The notes: generated by a model not told the origin, from the sequence alone. A DNA stretch of 64,000 bases from Octopus sinensis (GCF_006345805.1 NC_043001.1:86180001-86244000), one strand, 5' to 3'. Shown: positions 7,227 through 46,180, numbered from the stretch's first letter. A program made the numbers and translations.

Positions 7227-7302
7227 TATAATTTTGTAACACCATTAACATCAATGGTTGTCACCAAATCTACAGTTAAAGAGAAACATTTTGGCCAAAA
7301 CG
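7227..7302 (+). CDS. ITIH: ITIH-like exon YNFVTPLTSMVVTKSTVKEKHFGQN
   Basis: Acceptor gtgacAG, donor GTAAGT (7303). FVTPLTSMVV motif is conserved in ITIH/VIT-VWA proteins; phase 0 to 1. Confidence 0.93.
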
Positions 7303-7499
7303 GTAAGTTTTTACTTTATACCACTTTAATTTATTTACAGAGAGATCTTGTTGAAATAAAGTTTTCACGCTCCGTTATATATTTGTTTTGCTCTTTTTTA
7401 TGTGGAGTGGACATAAATAATTTGTCTTATGAAATTGGTAACTATATTCTATTCCTTATTTAATGTTGATTCCAATTTTGACAAAAGTTCATCTAGTTC

Positions 7500-7675
7500 G
7501 GGTGAGAAGGTAAGTCGATTACATCAACCTCAGTGCTCAGCTCGTACTTATTTGATCGACCTCGAAAGGATGAAAGGCAATGTCGACCTGGGCGGCATTT
7601 GAACTCAGAACGTAACGTCGGACGAAATGACACTTTACATTTGTCCATTGTGCTAACGATTCTGCTTGCACGTCA
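7500..7675 (-). mobile_element. SINE family S2 fragment
   Basis: Reverse complement of the gttctgagttcaaat...gtcgac...ctttcatcctttcg core. Confidence 0.75.
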
Positions 7676-7767
7676 CCTTCTTTTTAAAGGTTATCAATCA
7701 AACCTTGCTGTCGAGCTACGCAGCTACACAGTTATCAAGATCATTTTCCATTGCCTAGTTGCACTAT

Positions 7768-8175
7768 ACTCTCTTTCTCACTTTTATTTGTTTCAGTCAT
7801 TTGACTGCGGCCATGCTGGAGCACCGCCTTTAGTCGAGCAAATCGACCCCGGAACTTATTCTTTGTAAGCCCAGTACTTATTCTATCGGTCTCTTTTGCC
7901 GAACCGCTAAGTGACGGGGACGTAAACACACCAGCACTGGTTGTCAAGCAATGCTAGGGGGACAAACACAGACACACAAACACACACATACATATATATA
8001 CATACATATATACGACAGTCTCCTTTCAGTTCCCGTCTACCAAATCCACTCACAAGGCATTGGTCGGCCCGGGGTTATAGTAAAAGACACTTACCCAAGA
8101 TGCCACGCAGTGGGACTGAACCCGGAACCATGTGGTTGGTTAGCAATCTACTTACCACACAGCCACTCCTGCGCC
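7768..8175 (-). mobile_element. SINE family S1
   Basis: Near-identical reverse complement to 28156-28575. Confidence 0.88.
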
Positions 8176-9489
8176 TATATAGACAAAAGCTTTATTACAT
8201 AGCAATATTCTAGTATCTTGGTGGACCCTTCCACTAAATATTCATATACGTATTTGATTGATTTCTTTTCATCTCATATATTACATATTATGCATCAAAT
8301 AAACATTATTTAAGAAATTGTTCCTTGAAACACAATTGAAAAAGAGTTTCCTAATATCAATACATAGCATATGATGAAAACCTCCTAATATCAGTTTCAA
8401 AACAAAAGAAGCATCATTATATAGTATTTTATGTGAACAAATTTCCTATAACTCGCTACAAATCTATATAATTTTCATGAAAGAAATATTTCGATTCAAC
8501 GTAAATAAAAGTAAATAGTCAAGAAAATATTTATTTAAGAAAAAACCCCTCTTAGTTTTCATTCTTTTTCGGTTGCTAACATATGCAGATTGCGGATCTG
8601 AAGCTGAAAATTATCTTGAAAACAAATATGATAGAAATATTGTGGAAATATTTAAACAAACCTTTGAAAAATGATTTAGCAATTTCTTTCATGGATTTCT
8701 ATAAATTGTTTACTCCATTAACATTATCGATTCTAAGCATTTTTTTAAATGTCTAATAATATTTTAAAGATCTCATGATAGGTATTCGAATATACAATGT
8801 TATTTTAGTCACATTCTGAAATGGAATTTCTTTTCAAATTGATTTCTACTAAAATCTCTTTACTTGCAGTTATATTTTGTATTCTCGGATTTTCAGAAAC
8901 ACAGGGTATATATTTATAACCTCTTAGAGAATACGGTTCAGATATTGCTGAATATGAAAATAAGCTGGGCGATTAATTTTCCAGAACTATCTAAGTACTA
9001 TGATGAATGAAGTAATAATATGAAAGAACCTTAACGATAATCCCCAATTTTCTACACTTCATGTTATCCACTATCACAGCTTTTGAGTATTACCATAGTC
9101 CTCGTCGTCGTCGTTGTCACCATCGTCATCCATTTGCATCATCACCATCACCAGAATCATCATTATCCTTATATCTACATCACCATCTTCCTCGTCATCA
9201 TCATCGTCGTCGTCATCATCTGCTCAATCCATCTGTTCAAAATTTTCTTTCCAAAAGGTCCCATGACAGTAAAGTATTAAAGTACATCATTTTGGCAAAT
9301 TTCTGTTCATCCCATCAGTTTTCATGGGATAGACGAGAACAAAGTAAAATTATACAAAGTAAAATTGTAATGGCGGTCTATATAATATAAGTATTGTTCT
9401 TTATATATGTTGTCCTTGGTATACACTCTCTGAGAGGTTTTCTTGACAGCAATCACTAATTCGATAAATCATTTATTCTGGTGCAATAT

Positions 9490-9675
9490 CAGATATATAA
9501 ATATATATATAAATATAAATATATACATATATATATATATATAATATATATATAAATATAAATATATATATATATATATATATATATATATATATATATA
9601 TATATATATATATATATATATATATATATATATATATATATATATATATATATATATATATATATATATATATAT
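9490..9675. repeat. (TA)n tract; other long ones at 16560-16672, 28577-28699, 49060-49430 and 57690-57818
   Basis: Direct reading. Confidence 0.95.
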
Positions 9676-42900: not shown

Positions 42901-44129
42901 TGTATGAATATTGCTTACACTCAAAACATCTTACATGTCCAGGCTGTATTTGACATTTGTGAACAAGGAAAAAAAATCAGTAACGCATTCAAAATCAAAC
43001 GCATTTAAAAAAAAATAAAGAATATCATCTAGATTATGGCTAGCAAATAAGAGTTTACTGAAAGCAGTTGCCCTCAACTCCCACCTGAGCTTCAAGACGG
43101 TTCCGGAACCTGGTACATGCATTCCTTTTGTGTCCCTGACAATTTTCTCGAGCACCTCCATCGCCTTGGCCATGAAAACGAAGGAGGTTGATTGTTCACA
43201 AAAGTATCAAGCTGACAAGGAAAATTAGACATAGAAAATCGTGAATTTTTGTCCGAACGTCGAGTACGCGCATGTTTGTGTGTGCGTGTATGTGTTTGAG
43301 TATGTGTGCAATACTACTACCACTACTACTCGGGGCTAATGCAGTTTCGCAACTCTCCTGTACTCCTACTAGTTGTCGGAGATTACGAATATGCAAAAAA
43401 AAAAATTTTAATTTTACCCCCGTCCCCACCACCCATTTAATTTTTTGATTTTGTTTACTTTAAAGAGAGCATGGCGAACTGACGAACAATTGCAAATCGA
43501 AATTAAATATACAAACATTAAAGTGAAAAGAAATTGCGTTTTACTTGTGTTTGCCTTAAATGATCGTAAATAATAATTTAATGTAAATTAAATATACTCC
43601 ATTTTATGAGAAACAAACATTAATTTTTAATAATTAATGTTATAAAGTTTAATAAGGGGCTGAAATTTCACCCCTTAACCAATTTAAAATTTTGAACTTT
43701 TTCATCCATTTTTCTATTTGCTTGTCTATGTATCCCTGGCCGTATATTTATAAAATATATTTGTCAATTAAATATGGCGATCCTATAGAAGACGGTGTTA
43801 CGAAAACGTTGTTTCTTGCATATTCGGAATCTCCGTCATCTAAATTATAGGGAAGAAAAATTTCGAAAAAGTACAAAATTTTAAGGGGGTAGGGAACGAT
43901 AGTAGGGGTGGGGAGTGGTGGTAGAGGTGGGGAGGGGTAGTTGGGGTGGAGAGTGGTGGTAGGGGTGGGAAGTGATGGTAACGGTGAGAAGGGTGGTAGG
44001 GGTGGGGAGTTGGGTTAAATTTTTTTTTTGCATATTCGTAATCACCGACATTTAAAACGTAGGGATCCGGAAAAAAATTTTCAAAACAAGGAGGGGTGCG
44101 AAACTGCATCAGCCCCGAAGAATCCTTTC

Positions 44130-44770
44130 TACTATAGGCACACGGCTTCAAATTTGGGGGAAGGGATTAAGTCGACTACATCGACTCCAGTGCGTAACTG
44201 GTTCTTAATTTACAGACGCCGAAATGATGAAAGACAAAGTCGACCCCGGCGACATTTGAACCAAGAACACGAAGACAGACGAAATACCGCTAAGCATTTC
44301 ACCTGGTATATAACGATTCTGTCAGATCGCTGCCTTCATAATAATAATAATAATAATAACAACAACGACAATAACAACAACAACAACAATCCGTTCTATT
44401 ATAGGTACAAGGCCTGGAATTTGTTGGGAGGGGGATAACCAATTACATCAACCCCAGTACACAACTGGTACTTAATTTATCAAGTCCAAAAGGATGAAAG
44501 GCAAAGTCGACCGCGGTAGAATTTGAACTCAGAACGTAGCGGCAAATTAAATACCTATTTCTTTACTACCCACAAGGAGCTAAACACAGAGACGACAAAC
44601 AAGGACAGACAAACGGATTCAGTCGATTATATCGACCCCAGTGCGTAACTGGTACTTATTTAATGGACCCCGAAAGGATGAAAAGCAAAGTCGACCTCGG
44701 CGGAATTTGAACTCAGAACGTAACAGCAGACGAAATACCTATTTCTTTACTACCCACAAGGGGCTAAACT
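44130..44770 (-). mobile_element. Two to three SINE S2 copies separated by (AAT/AAC)n
   Basis: S2 core gaaaggcaaagtcgac..cggcggaatttgaactcagaacg recurs at about 44230, 44500 and 44680. Confidence 0.8.
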
Positions 44771-45060
44771 AAAAGGTCAAAAATGATATATAAATACTTT
44801 ATAAGGCACAAAATGTGTTAGAATAAAGAAATAGATGTGTCAGCTTTCTAACAAAAAATAAAGATTGTCAAAATATAATAATGGTGCAAAATGAGCAGCT
44901 TTCAAATATTACCATATACCTTAGTACAAATTTCATACTTGACGACCTGATATAATTTAAAATTTACTTTTATTCCTTTGAGTATATTTCAAAATTCAGA
45001 CTATTTCTATTTTTCTAATGTTTTGCATAATTATTATTTTTTCATCCATAATGCTTCCAG

Positions 45061-45219
45061 GAAAACTTACAACCACAGGAAAACCAACAACCACAGGAAA
45101 ACCTACAACCACAAGAAAACCTACAACCACAGGAAAACCTACAACCACAAGAAAACCTACAACCACAGGAAAACCTACAACCACAGGAAAACCGCTACCA
45201 ATTTTTCTTCATGCTCCTG
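45061..45219 (+). CDS. 159-nt Thr-rich exon KLTTT(G/R KPTTT)x6 GKPLPIFLHAP
   Basis: Acceptor cttccAG (45059-45060), donor GTAAGA (45220); 53 codons, phase 1/1; 18-bp internal repeat; ORF 45018-45299. Confidence 0.85.
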
Positions 45220-46156
45220 GTAAGAAAACATGTTACATTTTTAATTATACTTTTCTCAATATTATACGTTTAACATTTGAATATATGTTTAATTCTTAAT
45301 CGTGATACTTCAACCAATATATAGGAGCTAAATATTAAAACTGTATCAGCAACATTGGTTATCTTAGATGTAAAATTCAAAATTGTTCTTCACATTCCTT
45401 TATCATTAATATTAGCATATTAATGAATTTTGATGTGATTTGTATGGAATGGTGACAATATTGCTCAATAGCATCTGCACTATTTTCTTCAAGAACGTTT
45501 TGTCAAAAGGAAATGTAAACAAAAACGGTTGTGTTGCCTCTTACGTACACTCCAATAATCATTCTCCGTTCATTCGATACCAGTTACACAGTGCAGGTCT
45601 CTTTTCTTTAGCTATATTATCCTAATGGGCTTAATTAATTTCGTTGAATGGTTTATTATTATTACTCTTTCACAAGACTGATATACGTATTTCATACATA
45701 AATATTAACGTCTTTGTTCCATACCAAAGATTTGTTGCCAAATACAGTACGACCAAGATGATTAATTATTATTAATTTATAACAAAATATTTATAATTTA
45801 TTTGTAAAAACTTAATTTATTAACATCAAGGTATTTAGTTATTAGGAAGCTGAATATACTGTTCATAAGATTTTTGTAGAAATTTGTAATCGATTAATTA
45901 AACATGAAACACGAGAAAACACGATATCTTCCAATTTGTTATGGAATATAAATTCTATAATGAATTTGTTTCTTAACTTTTTGTTTGAGTAAGATAAAAG
46001 AACGCTTCTCTTGTTTTTAGTATTTCAGTAAGAAATATGCATACCTAAACATGTATATGACTCTGTGATTTGCTTAGTAAAAATACGTAAACAGGTTTAC
46101 ATTCGCACGTGAATTGTTTGAAGATTATTTTTGTTTGTTTTTCCTTGTCTTTTTAG

Positions 46157-46180
46157 CCATTGCCTTAAAACCATTAAATT
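46157..46180 (+). CDS. 24-nt microexon (A)IALKPLN
   Basis: Long pyrimidine tract + ttttAG, donor GTAAGT; phase 1/1. Confidence 0.72.

Follow-up and report, generated by a model that had tools for sequence, protein, structure and literature searches.

A serial chain of in-frame microexons in the linker region of an ITIH4-like gene of Octopus sinensis and its octopod relatives

A 64,000-nt stretch of the Octopus sinensis genome (NC_043001.1:86180001-86244000 of GCF_006345805.1; hereafter, "the window") carries an ITIH4-like heavy-chain gene, in which a chain of 14 predicted microexons follows directly after the conserved motif FVTPLTSMVV. Exon maps compared across species show that this microexon chain is conserved in the ITIH4-like family of octopods, and public gene models already contain it. 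The chain grew by the tandem duplication of intron–exon–intron units, which have undergone birth-and-death evolution. By analogy with vertebrate ITIH4, the region is probably a fast-evolving, cassette-spliced bait or linker segment of a secreted cephalopod ITIH4-like protein, and we hold this reading with moderate confidence.

Exon structure of the gene

All coordinates are positions in the window, which has the base composition of AT-rich eukaryotic DNA, and all features of the gene lie on the + strand (Table 1). The peptides listed in the original prediction, which had been made from the sequence alone, were searched in the three forward frames, where each was located only once and in the expected order, and the exon boundaries were then read on the sequence. 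The 14 proposed microexons (27, 12, 18, 27, 15×5, 18, 30, 18, 30, and 30 nt; designated E1–E14) were all found in place with AG and GT signals and in phase 1-1, and the translation of the joined exons was stop-free and identical to the proposed peptide. The length of every exon from E1 to E14 is a multiple of 3, the introns range from 0.3 to 6 kb, and every exon of the chain is preceded by a pyrimidine-rich tract and AG and followed by a GT(A/G)(A/T/G)GT donor. The final 24-nt exon proposed at 46157–46180 had to be replaced by a conserved 105-nt exon, because the apparent donor GT at 46181 is part of a Cys codon within that exon; the cephalopod homologs all read through 46180 (…KPLNCKLDLCFTDN…). 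The gene extends past this point through two further coding exons to a TGA stop at 48961. Every exon from E0 through the last coding one is in phase 1, the C-terminal exons of 105, 285, and 134 nt included, so that the microexons are not alone in their phase-1 symmetry.

Table 1. Coordinates of the exons and exon units of the ITIH4-like gene in the window (omega, ratio of nonsynonymous to synonymous rates; L001, O. bimaculoides ortholog locus; families are those of common intron flanks)
Feature	Position	Strand	Length (nt)	Encoded sequence or content	Counterpart, basis, or remark
ITIH-like exon between the VIT and VWA domains	488-651	+		…ELEYASVDYINSKEVYIKYNP…NFIY	tblastn of homologs P0122, P0125, and P0007; boundaries read
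VWA exon 1	3182-3470	+		Metal ion-dependent adhesion site (MIDAS)-type motif DVSGSMSG	93.8% nt identity to O. bimaculoides; omega 0.65
VWA exon 2 and conserved region after it	4762-5471	+			Homology, boundaries read; omega 0.53
E0	7227-7302	+		YNFVTPLTSMVVTKSTVKEKHFGQN	Last conventional exon before the chain; ends in phase 1, one base into a codon, before GTAAGT
E1	11486-11512	+	27	DDDSSGRRG	Ortholog, O. bimaculoides exon L001:26407-26433
E2	13722-13733	+	12	GAHR	Strong splice signals, passes the strict scan; status uncertain
E3	15436-15453	+	18	KRPASV	Family C; ortholog, 15-nt exon L001:33289-33303 (KITLT)
E4	19637-19663	+	27	GRRHPFRSH	Family C; ortholog, 30-nt exon L001:34600-34629 (GATNPFRFNY)
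Five-unit tandem array	21426-22918	+		294-bp intron–exon–intron units carrying E5–E9	O. bimaculoides, three such units, all exons
E5	21576-21590	+	15	FRPSH	
E6	21878-21892	+	15	VRPSQ	
E7	22169-22183	+	15	VRPSH	
E8	22471-22485	+	15	VRPSQ	
E9	22767-22781	+	15	VRPSK	
E10	29030-29047	+	18	GYYSMT	Family B; positional ortholog L001:43566-43583
E11	29524-29553	+	30	VLDPSRLPSR	Family A; ortholog L001:44606-44635 (PHDIPFDSSR), cassette skipped in isoform X3
Decayed family-A unit	32732-32746	+		Dead microexon	Acceptor kept, donor GT changed to AT
E12	33958-33975	+	18	GQLGMR	Family B; homologous O. bimaculoides 18-nt exons at 44092, 46632, and 48795 (GLNGMR, NHHVMR, and GNHGMR)
E13	39127-39156	+	30	VHRLSILASR	Extra family-A copy, signals intact
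Family-B unit remnant	40415-40530 (about)	+		Downstream flank only	Exon and acceptor lost
E14	41147-41176	+	30	VLDTYGLPSR	Extra family-A copy; three nonsynonymous changes relative to E11
E15	45061-45219	+	159	18-nt tandem repeat coding (TTTGKP/TTTRKP)×7, Thr-rich and mucin-like, then LPIFLHAP	
105-nt exon	46157-46261	+	105	AIALKPLNCKLDLCFTDNTICRNQTGIMFLNDKYA; start of the C-terminal domain (KPLNCKLDLCF...)	Homologs read through
C-terminal domain exon	47404-47688	+	285		Phase 1-1
Last coding exon	48828-48961	+	134	End …SLSSCFTM and TGA stop	

Microexon chains in other octopods

RefSeq proteins were spliced exactly onto three loci, namely the ortholog locus of O. bimaculoides (L001), its paralog (L003), and a locus of Argonauta hians (L002). 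The ortholog locus is syntenic and collinear with the window, with 88–93% identity through the introns. Its isoform X1 contains microexons of 27, 15, 30, 15, 15, 15, 18, 30, 18, and 18 nt, followed by an exon of 84 nt and the terminal exon. The paralog contains microexons of 27, 24, 18, 15, 18, and 15 nt, followed by exons of 66, 105, 267, and 131 nt, and the Argonauta locus contains microexons of 24, 15, 33, 15, 33, 15, 33, 15, 33, 15, 33, and 39 nt, followed by exons of 105, 276, and 131 nt. All the mapped microexons of the three loci are in phase 1-1. After FVTPLTAMVV, the ortholog reads DNDSSGVRR-KITLT-GATNPFRFNY-FRPSQ-VRPSH-VRPSH-GLNGMR-PHDIPFDSSR-…-GKPATTGKP…-AIALKPLNC…, which is the architecture of the window; the counterpart of E15 is the 84-nt exon, with fewer repeats. 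It had been expected that annotation would easily miss such exons. This was the case for two 2015 models of O. bimaculoides (A0A0L8FIP6 and A0A0L8G3A3), which stop at the first microexon, but the chain is now present in the RefSeq annotation of the sister species.

Duplication and decay of exon units

Based on their common intron flanks, the microexons were assigned to three families. Family A consists of the 15-nt exons E5–E9 and the 30-nt exons E11, E13, and E14, with the donor context GTATGTAACTATTT. Family B consists of the 18-nt exons E10 and E12, with the flank GTAGGTARAAATATTTT, and family C consists of E3 and E4, with the flank GTAAGTAGAMTATT. Within the five-unit array, a two-unit block of 593 bp is duplicated with 98.5% identity, and the array has counterparts in O. 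bimaculoides for three of its five units. Decay was seen in one unit each of families A and B, which retain different parts of the unit (Table 1). In Argonauta hians, a four-unit block (15+33+15+33 nt) is duplicated at L002 17345–24593, with identical or near-identical exons, and this expansion is recent and independent of that in the window.

Splice signals and the status of single exons

The interval between E0 and E15 (7303–45060) was scanned under strict conditions, i.e., at least 11 pyrimidines among 14 positions, an AG, an open phase-1 frame of 9–33 nt, and a GTRDGT donor. The scan returned 11 sites on the + strand, all 11 of them in the list of predicted microexons, 2 sites on the minus strand, and 1 site elsewhere in the window (22 kb). 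The background of relaxed signals is high, at approximately 20–30 sites per strand, and E3, E4, and E10 are therefore assigned by comparison across species and not by their signals alone. The possibility that the microexons are chance look-alikes was ruled out by their orthology to modelled exons, by the common flanks of the units, and by the enrichment in the strict scan. Conservation between species failed as an exon detector, the introns themselves being 88–93% identical between the two octopus species.

The claim that any subset of these exons could be skipped in frame held for 135 of the 136 ordered joins among E0–E16, but the join of E4 to E15 creates a TGA. Most exons of the chain end in G, so that the residue at the junction is usually unchanged, whatever the upstream exon.

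A modelled exon of O. bimaculoides, either one-to-one or of the same unit family, supports E1, E3, E4, E5–E9, E11, and E12. For the remaining four exons (E2, E10, E13, and E14), it is possible, although we consider it somewhat doubtful, that they are unused pseudo-exons and that the true transcript contains approximately 10 microexons, like isoform X1 of O. bimaculoides. No sequence aligned with E2 in the O. bimaculoides ortholog locus, even with 7-nt words, and a 1.2-kb N gap lies approximately 300 bp upstream of the expected position; the chances that E2 is a real exon are about evenly balanced. The positional ortholog of E10 is intact, yet it is absent from RefSeq isoforms X1–X3. E13 and E14 have no one-to-one ortholog in the same locus. 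Together with the high background of relaxed signals and the dead copies, which show that units do decay, these observations are consistent with disuse. However, all four exons keep an AG, an open phase-1 frame with a length divisible by 3, and a consensus donor, and E2, E13, and E14 pass the strict scan, in which the background is 1–2 sites per 38 kb. Furthermore, the O. bimaculoides assembly is gapped in the interval of E13 and E14, and its copy number may be an underestimate.

Microexon skipping

RefSeq lists three isoforms of the ortholog in O. bimaculoides (XP_052823894-6); of these, X2 lacks the 18-nt NHHVMR exon and X3 lacks the 30-nt PHDIPFDSSR exon, the ortholog of E11. The paralog has five RefSeq isoforms (XP_014784808-12), which combine skips of three microexons of 18, 15, and 18 nt. 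In both genes, the isoforms differ by one or two whole microexons each. A combinatorial splicing system had been proposed for the chain; the O. bimaculoides models contain in-frame skips of whole microexons, but they amount to a handful of single and double skips and not to a large repertoire.

Skipping in this linker is not confined to octopods. Mammalian ITIH4 isoforms in RefSeq and UniProt (several species) skip in-frame cassettes of 5–29 residues in the same linker after FVTPLTSMVV, and isoforms X1–X3 of an ITIH3-like protein of the oyster Crassostrea virginica (P0131, P0133, and P0132) differ at this linker by two in-frame cassettes, 9 and 37 residues long. Long-read data from the human brain have also shown that some ITIH4 isoforms omit the exons that encode the protease-susceptible region (PMC12455821). 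Thus, alternative splicing of this linker appears to be widespread in ITIH genes, and its presence in both molluscs and vertebrates suggests that it is old. Since the skipping of linker cassettes is seen in the mammalian and oyster models and has been published for human ITIH4, it is not new as a principle.

Accelerated change of the exon cores

The exon cores have diverged far more than their flanks between the window and O. bimaculoides. The core identity was 10/18 for E3 (flanks, 0.87), 20/30 for E4 (flanks, 0.96), 16/30 for E11 (flanks, 0.87), and 10/18 for E10 (flanks, 0.87), and the length differences in E3 and E4 are in-frame 3-nt indels. When E3, E4, and E11 were pooled, 46 of 78 core positions were identical, compared with 658 of 730 positions in the 120-nt flanks (Fisher p = 2.6e-11). 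According to pooled counts by the Nei–Gojobori method, with approximately 41 aligned codons, the proportion of differences was 0.386 at nonsynonymous sites (pN; 35.8/92.5) and 0.041 at synonymous sites (pS; 1.2/30.5), and the intron distance was 0.102; pN differed from pS at p = 8e-5 and from the introns at p = 3e-11. In the exons of this gene that encode the VWA and C-terminal domains, omega was 0.37–0.65. Paralogous units showed the same tendency, with an exon identity of approximately 0.65 and a flank identity of 0.86–0.94, the p-values being very small but the pairs not independent; the argument on rates therefore relies on the counts from single orthologous pairs and not on pairs of paralogous units. 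Positive selection on the exon cores is the simplest reading of these counts, because relaxed constraint cannot exceed the neutral rate.

These rates also bear on the proposal that the chain is a constitutive disordered spacer, in which all the microexons are normally included, the linker does no more than hold the VIT–VWA body and the C-terminal domain apart, and the sequence drifts because only length and flexibility matter. The low-complexity composition of the linker, the wide differences among the linker sequences of cephalopod homologs, and the small number of annotated skip isoforms would all fit such a spacer. However, drift cannot raise the nonsynonymous divergence (0.39) to approximately four times the value of the neighbouring introns (0.10) while pS is 0.04; only two copies have failed to keep their frame and splice signals; and the annotated isoforms do skip exons. 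We therefore regard a constitutive spacer as unlikely.

Identity of the gene

The protein encoded in the window matched the VWA domain (PF00092) with E = 2.2e-24, and the MIDAS-type DxSxS motif is present as DVSGSMSG. Its closest database match was O. bimaculoides "ITIH4 isoform X2", covering 100% of the query, which included the microexon product. The FVTPLTSMVV motif, at 7233–7262, occurs in mammalian, bivalve, and cephalopod ITIH proteins. The coding exons of the VIT domain (PF08487) lie upstream of window position 1, and the domain is present in the O. bimaculoides ortholog (P0122) and in paralogs. The VWA domain and the closest match support the proposed ITIH-like nature of the gene and mark it as an ITIH4-like heavy chain. 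The ITIH4 names derive from automated annotation and not from phylogeny, and the cephalopod ITIH4-like genes form a tandem family of their own. In O. vulgaris, the model CAI9723174.1 (P0150; 2709 aa) joins three or more tandem ITIH4-like paralogs into a single fused protein. The linker of one of these paralogs is an acidic repeat with approximately eight copies of VPEAEI-type units, its charge being the reverse of that of the RPSH/RPSQ repeats in the window gene.

For the C-terminal ITI_HC_C domain (PF06668), Pfam returned no hit at E < 0.01, and BLASTP found no similarity of the C-terminus to the oyster protein. The DPHFII site, through which other heavy chains are linked to bikunin, was sought in the linker product, and DPHF is absent; a variable linker occupies that position instead. 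The placement of this linker where vertebrate ITIH4 has its protease-susceptible region (PMC7793589) agrees with what had been proposed from the sequence.

A candidate bait region

The microexons encode a product of approximately 96 residues, with 20% Arg, 16% Ser, and 10% Pro, a net charge of +16, and five dibasic positions, which we take from its composition alone to be disordered, and which is followed by the Thr-rich (TTTGKP)n exon. In human ITIH4, several proteases cleave the corresponding region and are then inhibited through a non-covalent complex (PMC7793589). A peptide of a paralog, spanning the end of the linker and the next exon, has been found in octopus ink (PMC10142993), indicating that at least one member of the ITIH4-like family is secreted.

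The reading that we favour, a cassette-spliced bait, would operate as follows. The variable linker would lie between the FVTPLTSMVV motif and the C-terminal domain, at the position of the vertebrate ITIH4 bait. Its symmetric phase 1-1 microexons of 12–30 nt could be left out singly without breaking the frame, and units would be gained by tandem duplication within the three flank families and lost by decay. By analogy with human ITIH4, the linker may offer cleavage sites to trypsin-like or dibasic-specific proteases, and positive selection on the cores, gain and loss of units, and cassette skipping would together vary the sites that are offered. We infer splicing in this species and the secretion, protease cleavage, and bait function of this particular protein.

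Several points weigh against this reading. The skip isoforms are computed RefSeq models, in which read support is not visible, and two database searches returned no transcript or protein of the same species (the first gave no near-identical hit, and the second, with the linker and C-terminus, gave three weak hits). No strict furin-type R-X-K/R-R site is present in the linker product. The alignment by hhalign of the cephalopod C-termini with ITI_HC_C-bearing proteins was weak (probability, 56%; E = 1e-4), placing KPLNC…LCF…LL.D at the start of ITI_HC_C, where other heavy chains carry DPHFII, and because this match is weak, the mechanism of human ITIH4 is transferred only by analogy. The selection test is small (approximately 41 codons) and assumes one-to-one orthology in a repeat-rich region with gaps in the assembly, and the exon divergence could be inflated by short-tract gene conversion between units. 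Finally, the five 15-nt exons E5–E9 are nearly identical and not diversified, and they do not show the core-acceleration pattern.

A broader version of the favoured reading is that octopods have a germline "bait cassette" system, in which the units of a tandem ITIH4-like family, with their conserved intron flanks, are duplicated or deleted in each lineage, strong positive selection (omega near 10) acts on their coding cores of 12–33 nt, and splicing includes or omits the units singly. Such a system would offer proteases a wide and rapidly changing set of substrates, either as an innate defence or as part of secretions. We put this forward tentatively and consider it rather unlikely in this full form. 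If true, it would be a diversification device resembling that of the schistosome micro-exon genes (MEGs) in a free-living mollusc, set in a conserved multidomain scaffold, and it would include paralog linkers of opposite chemistry, with the basic RPSH repeats seen here and the acidic VPEAEI repeats of the O. vulgaris paralog.

The basic linker may alternatively be a segment that binds polyanions and anchors the protein to a matrix (glycosaminoglycans, mucus, or the ink matrix), replacing the covalent hyaluronan link of the bikunin-linked ITIH1–3, with the repeat number setting the avidity. The net charge of +16 and the missing DPHF site are in keeping with this, as are the Thr-rich mucin-like exon that comes next and the paralog peptide in octopus ink (PMC10142993), and the acidic repeat linker of the O. 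vulgaris paralog suggests that charge matters. However, electrostatics do not obviously explain the rapid replacement at non-charged positions. Polyanion binding, which we judge improbable, is also compatible with a bait role and is thus only partly a rival. The short repeated motifs and frequent Arg residues of the linker would fit a precursor releasing short repeated peptides (VRPSH/VRPSQ-type) on proteolysis. We nevertheless consider such a precursor very improbable, because no dibasic processing sites flank the repeats, no amidation Gly comes after the RPSH/RPSQ units (the sole Gly before dibasic residues is in the GRR of E4), a large VIT–VWA carrier would be atypical, and we know of no homologous peptide.

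Comparison with known systems

The closest parallel to the octopod linker is the protease-susceptible, proline-rich region of vertebrate ITIH4, which likewise lies directly after FVTPLTSMVVTK and before the C-terminal domain. Vertebrate ITIH4 also has no DPHFII site, and many RefSeq isoforms from mammals leave out small linker exons without a shift of frame. However, the octopod exons are smaller (12–33 nt, compared with roughly 27–90 nt deduced from the mammalian cassettes of 9–29 aa) and more numerous (10–14), and they occur in tandem families with common intron flanks. The linker in the window is also rich in Arg and Ser, whereas the vertebrate linker is rich in Pro, and a bait role here would follow by analogy. 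In the oyster, the ITIH3-like protein similarly combines in-frame linker cassettes with Thr-rich repeats, but its cassettes are larger, and no chain of 15–30-nt exons is evident from the oyster proteins.

The chain also resembles the schistosome MEGs, which have symmetric microexons with lengths divisible by 3, long introns, secreted products, exon skipping, and accelerated evolution (bioRxiv 10.1101/2023.06.21.545858; PMC4350168). The 14 exons of 12–30 nt in the window are within the MEG limit of 36 nt, are multiples of 3, and are separated by long introns; accelerated evolution was found in the microexon part, in a small sample of approximately 41 codons; and variation by skipping is predicted by the computed isoforms that RefSeq gives for the ortholog and paralog in O. 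bimaculoides, while secretion is presumed. Whereas the coding sequence of MEGs is mostly microexonic and their proteins are small, the microexons here account for 285 nt, or 95 of at least 734 residues, and are flanked by eight conventional exons. For this reason, the gene in the window is not a MEG by definition, and the resemblance implies no homology.

Drosophila Tep2, a member of the alpha-2-macroglobulin/TEP family, provides a third comparison, in that its hypervariable bait segment for proteases owes its diversity to alternative splicing (PMC5489563), as proposed for the window. However, Tep2 uses alternative versions of one exon in a thioester protein, whereas the gene in the window has serial cassette microexons in a VIT–VWA protein with no thioester.

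Literature searches on cephalopod microexons or octopus ITIH returned no description of this chain. The exons of the sister species in RefSeq and the alternative splicing of the linker in vertebrates were already known; the extreme microexon chain of octopods, the families into which its units fall, the gain and loss of these units, and the acceleration of the exon cores were not found described. If the favoured bait reading holds, very short exons, which are too short for enhancers of their own, would form an evolvable module, in which the conserved intron flanks would keep the exons spliceable while the cores change freely and the copy number shifts between close species. The bait mechanism of ITIH4, the schistosome MEGs, and the splicing of TEP bait regions would then be joined in one locus.

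Annotation of related gene models and other elements

The 2015 models are truncated, the O. vulgaris model is fused, and the current O. bimaculoides models are probably truncated by an assembly gap, so that this gene family needs annotation based on long reads. In the ortholog locus, an assembly gap (L001:53452–54295) occupies the place where the 285-nt C-terminal exon is expected, and the last exon lies downstream, at about L001 55245–55492. The three RefSeq isoforms of the ortholog end in …YASK*, reading through the donor of the 105-nt exon, and this truncation is probably an artefact of the assembly rather than biology. The same locus contains two intact 18-nt look-alikes of family B (L001:43566–43583 and L001:47860–47877), each with an AG, an open phase-1 frame, and a GTAGGT donor, which are not used in isoforms X1–X3 and may be rarely included cassettes or unannotated exons.

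Several mobile or repetitive elements were also noted in the window. An open stretch at 6520–6744 (+), which reads PHPPYSPDIAPSDFHLFRSL…, resembles the C-terminus of a mariner-type transposase; a search of Pfam returned no hit. A degenerate non-long-terminal-repeat retrotransposon (35400–37300, +), with a reverse-transcriptase YMDD-type motif and an (AGA)40 run, lies in sense orientation in the intron between E12 and E13 and accounts for the AT-skew peak at 34–38 kb. A dispersed repeat occurs in two copies (7790–8170 and 28251–28575), both of which match L001 56761–57107 outside the orthologous positions, and is presumably a short interspersed nuclear element-like sequence common in these genomes.

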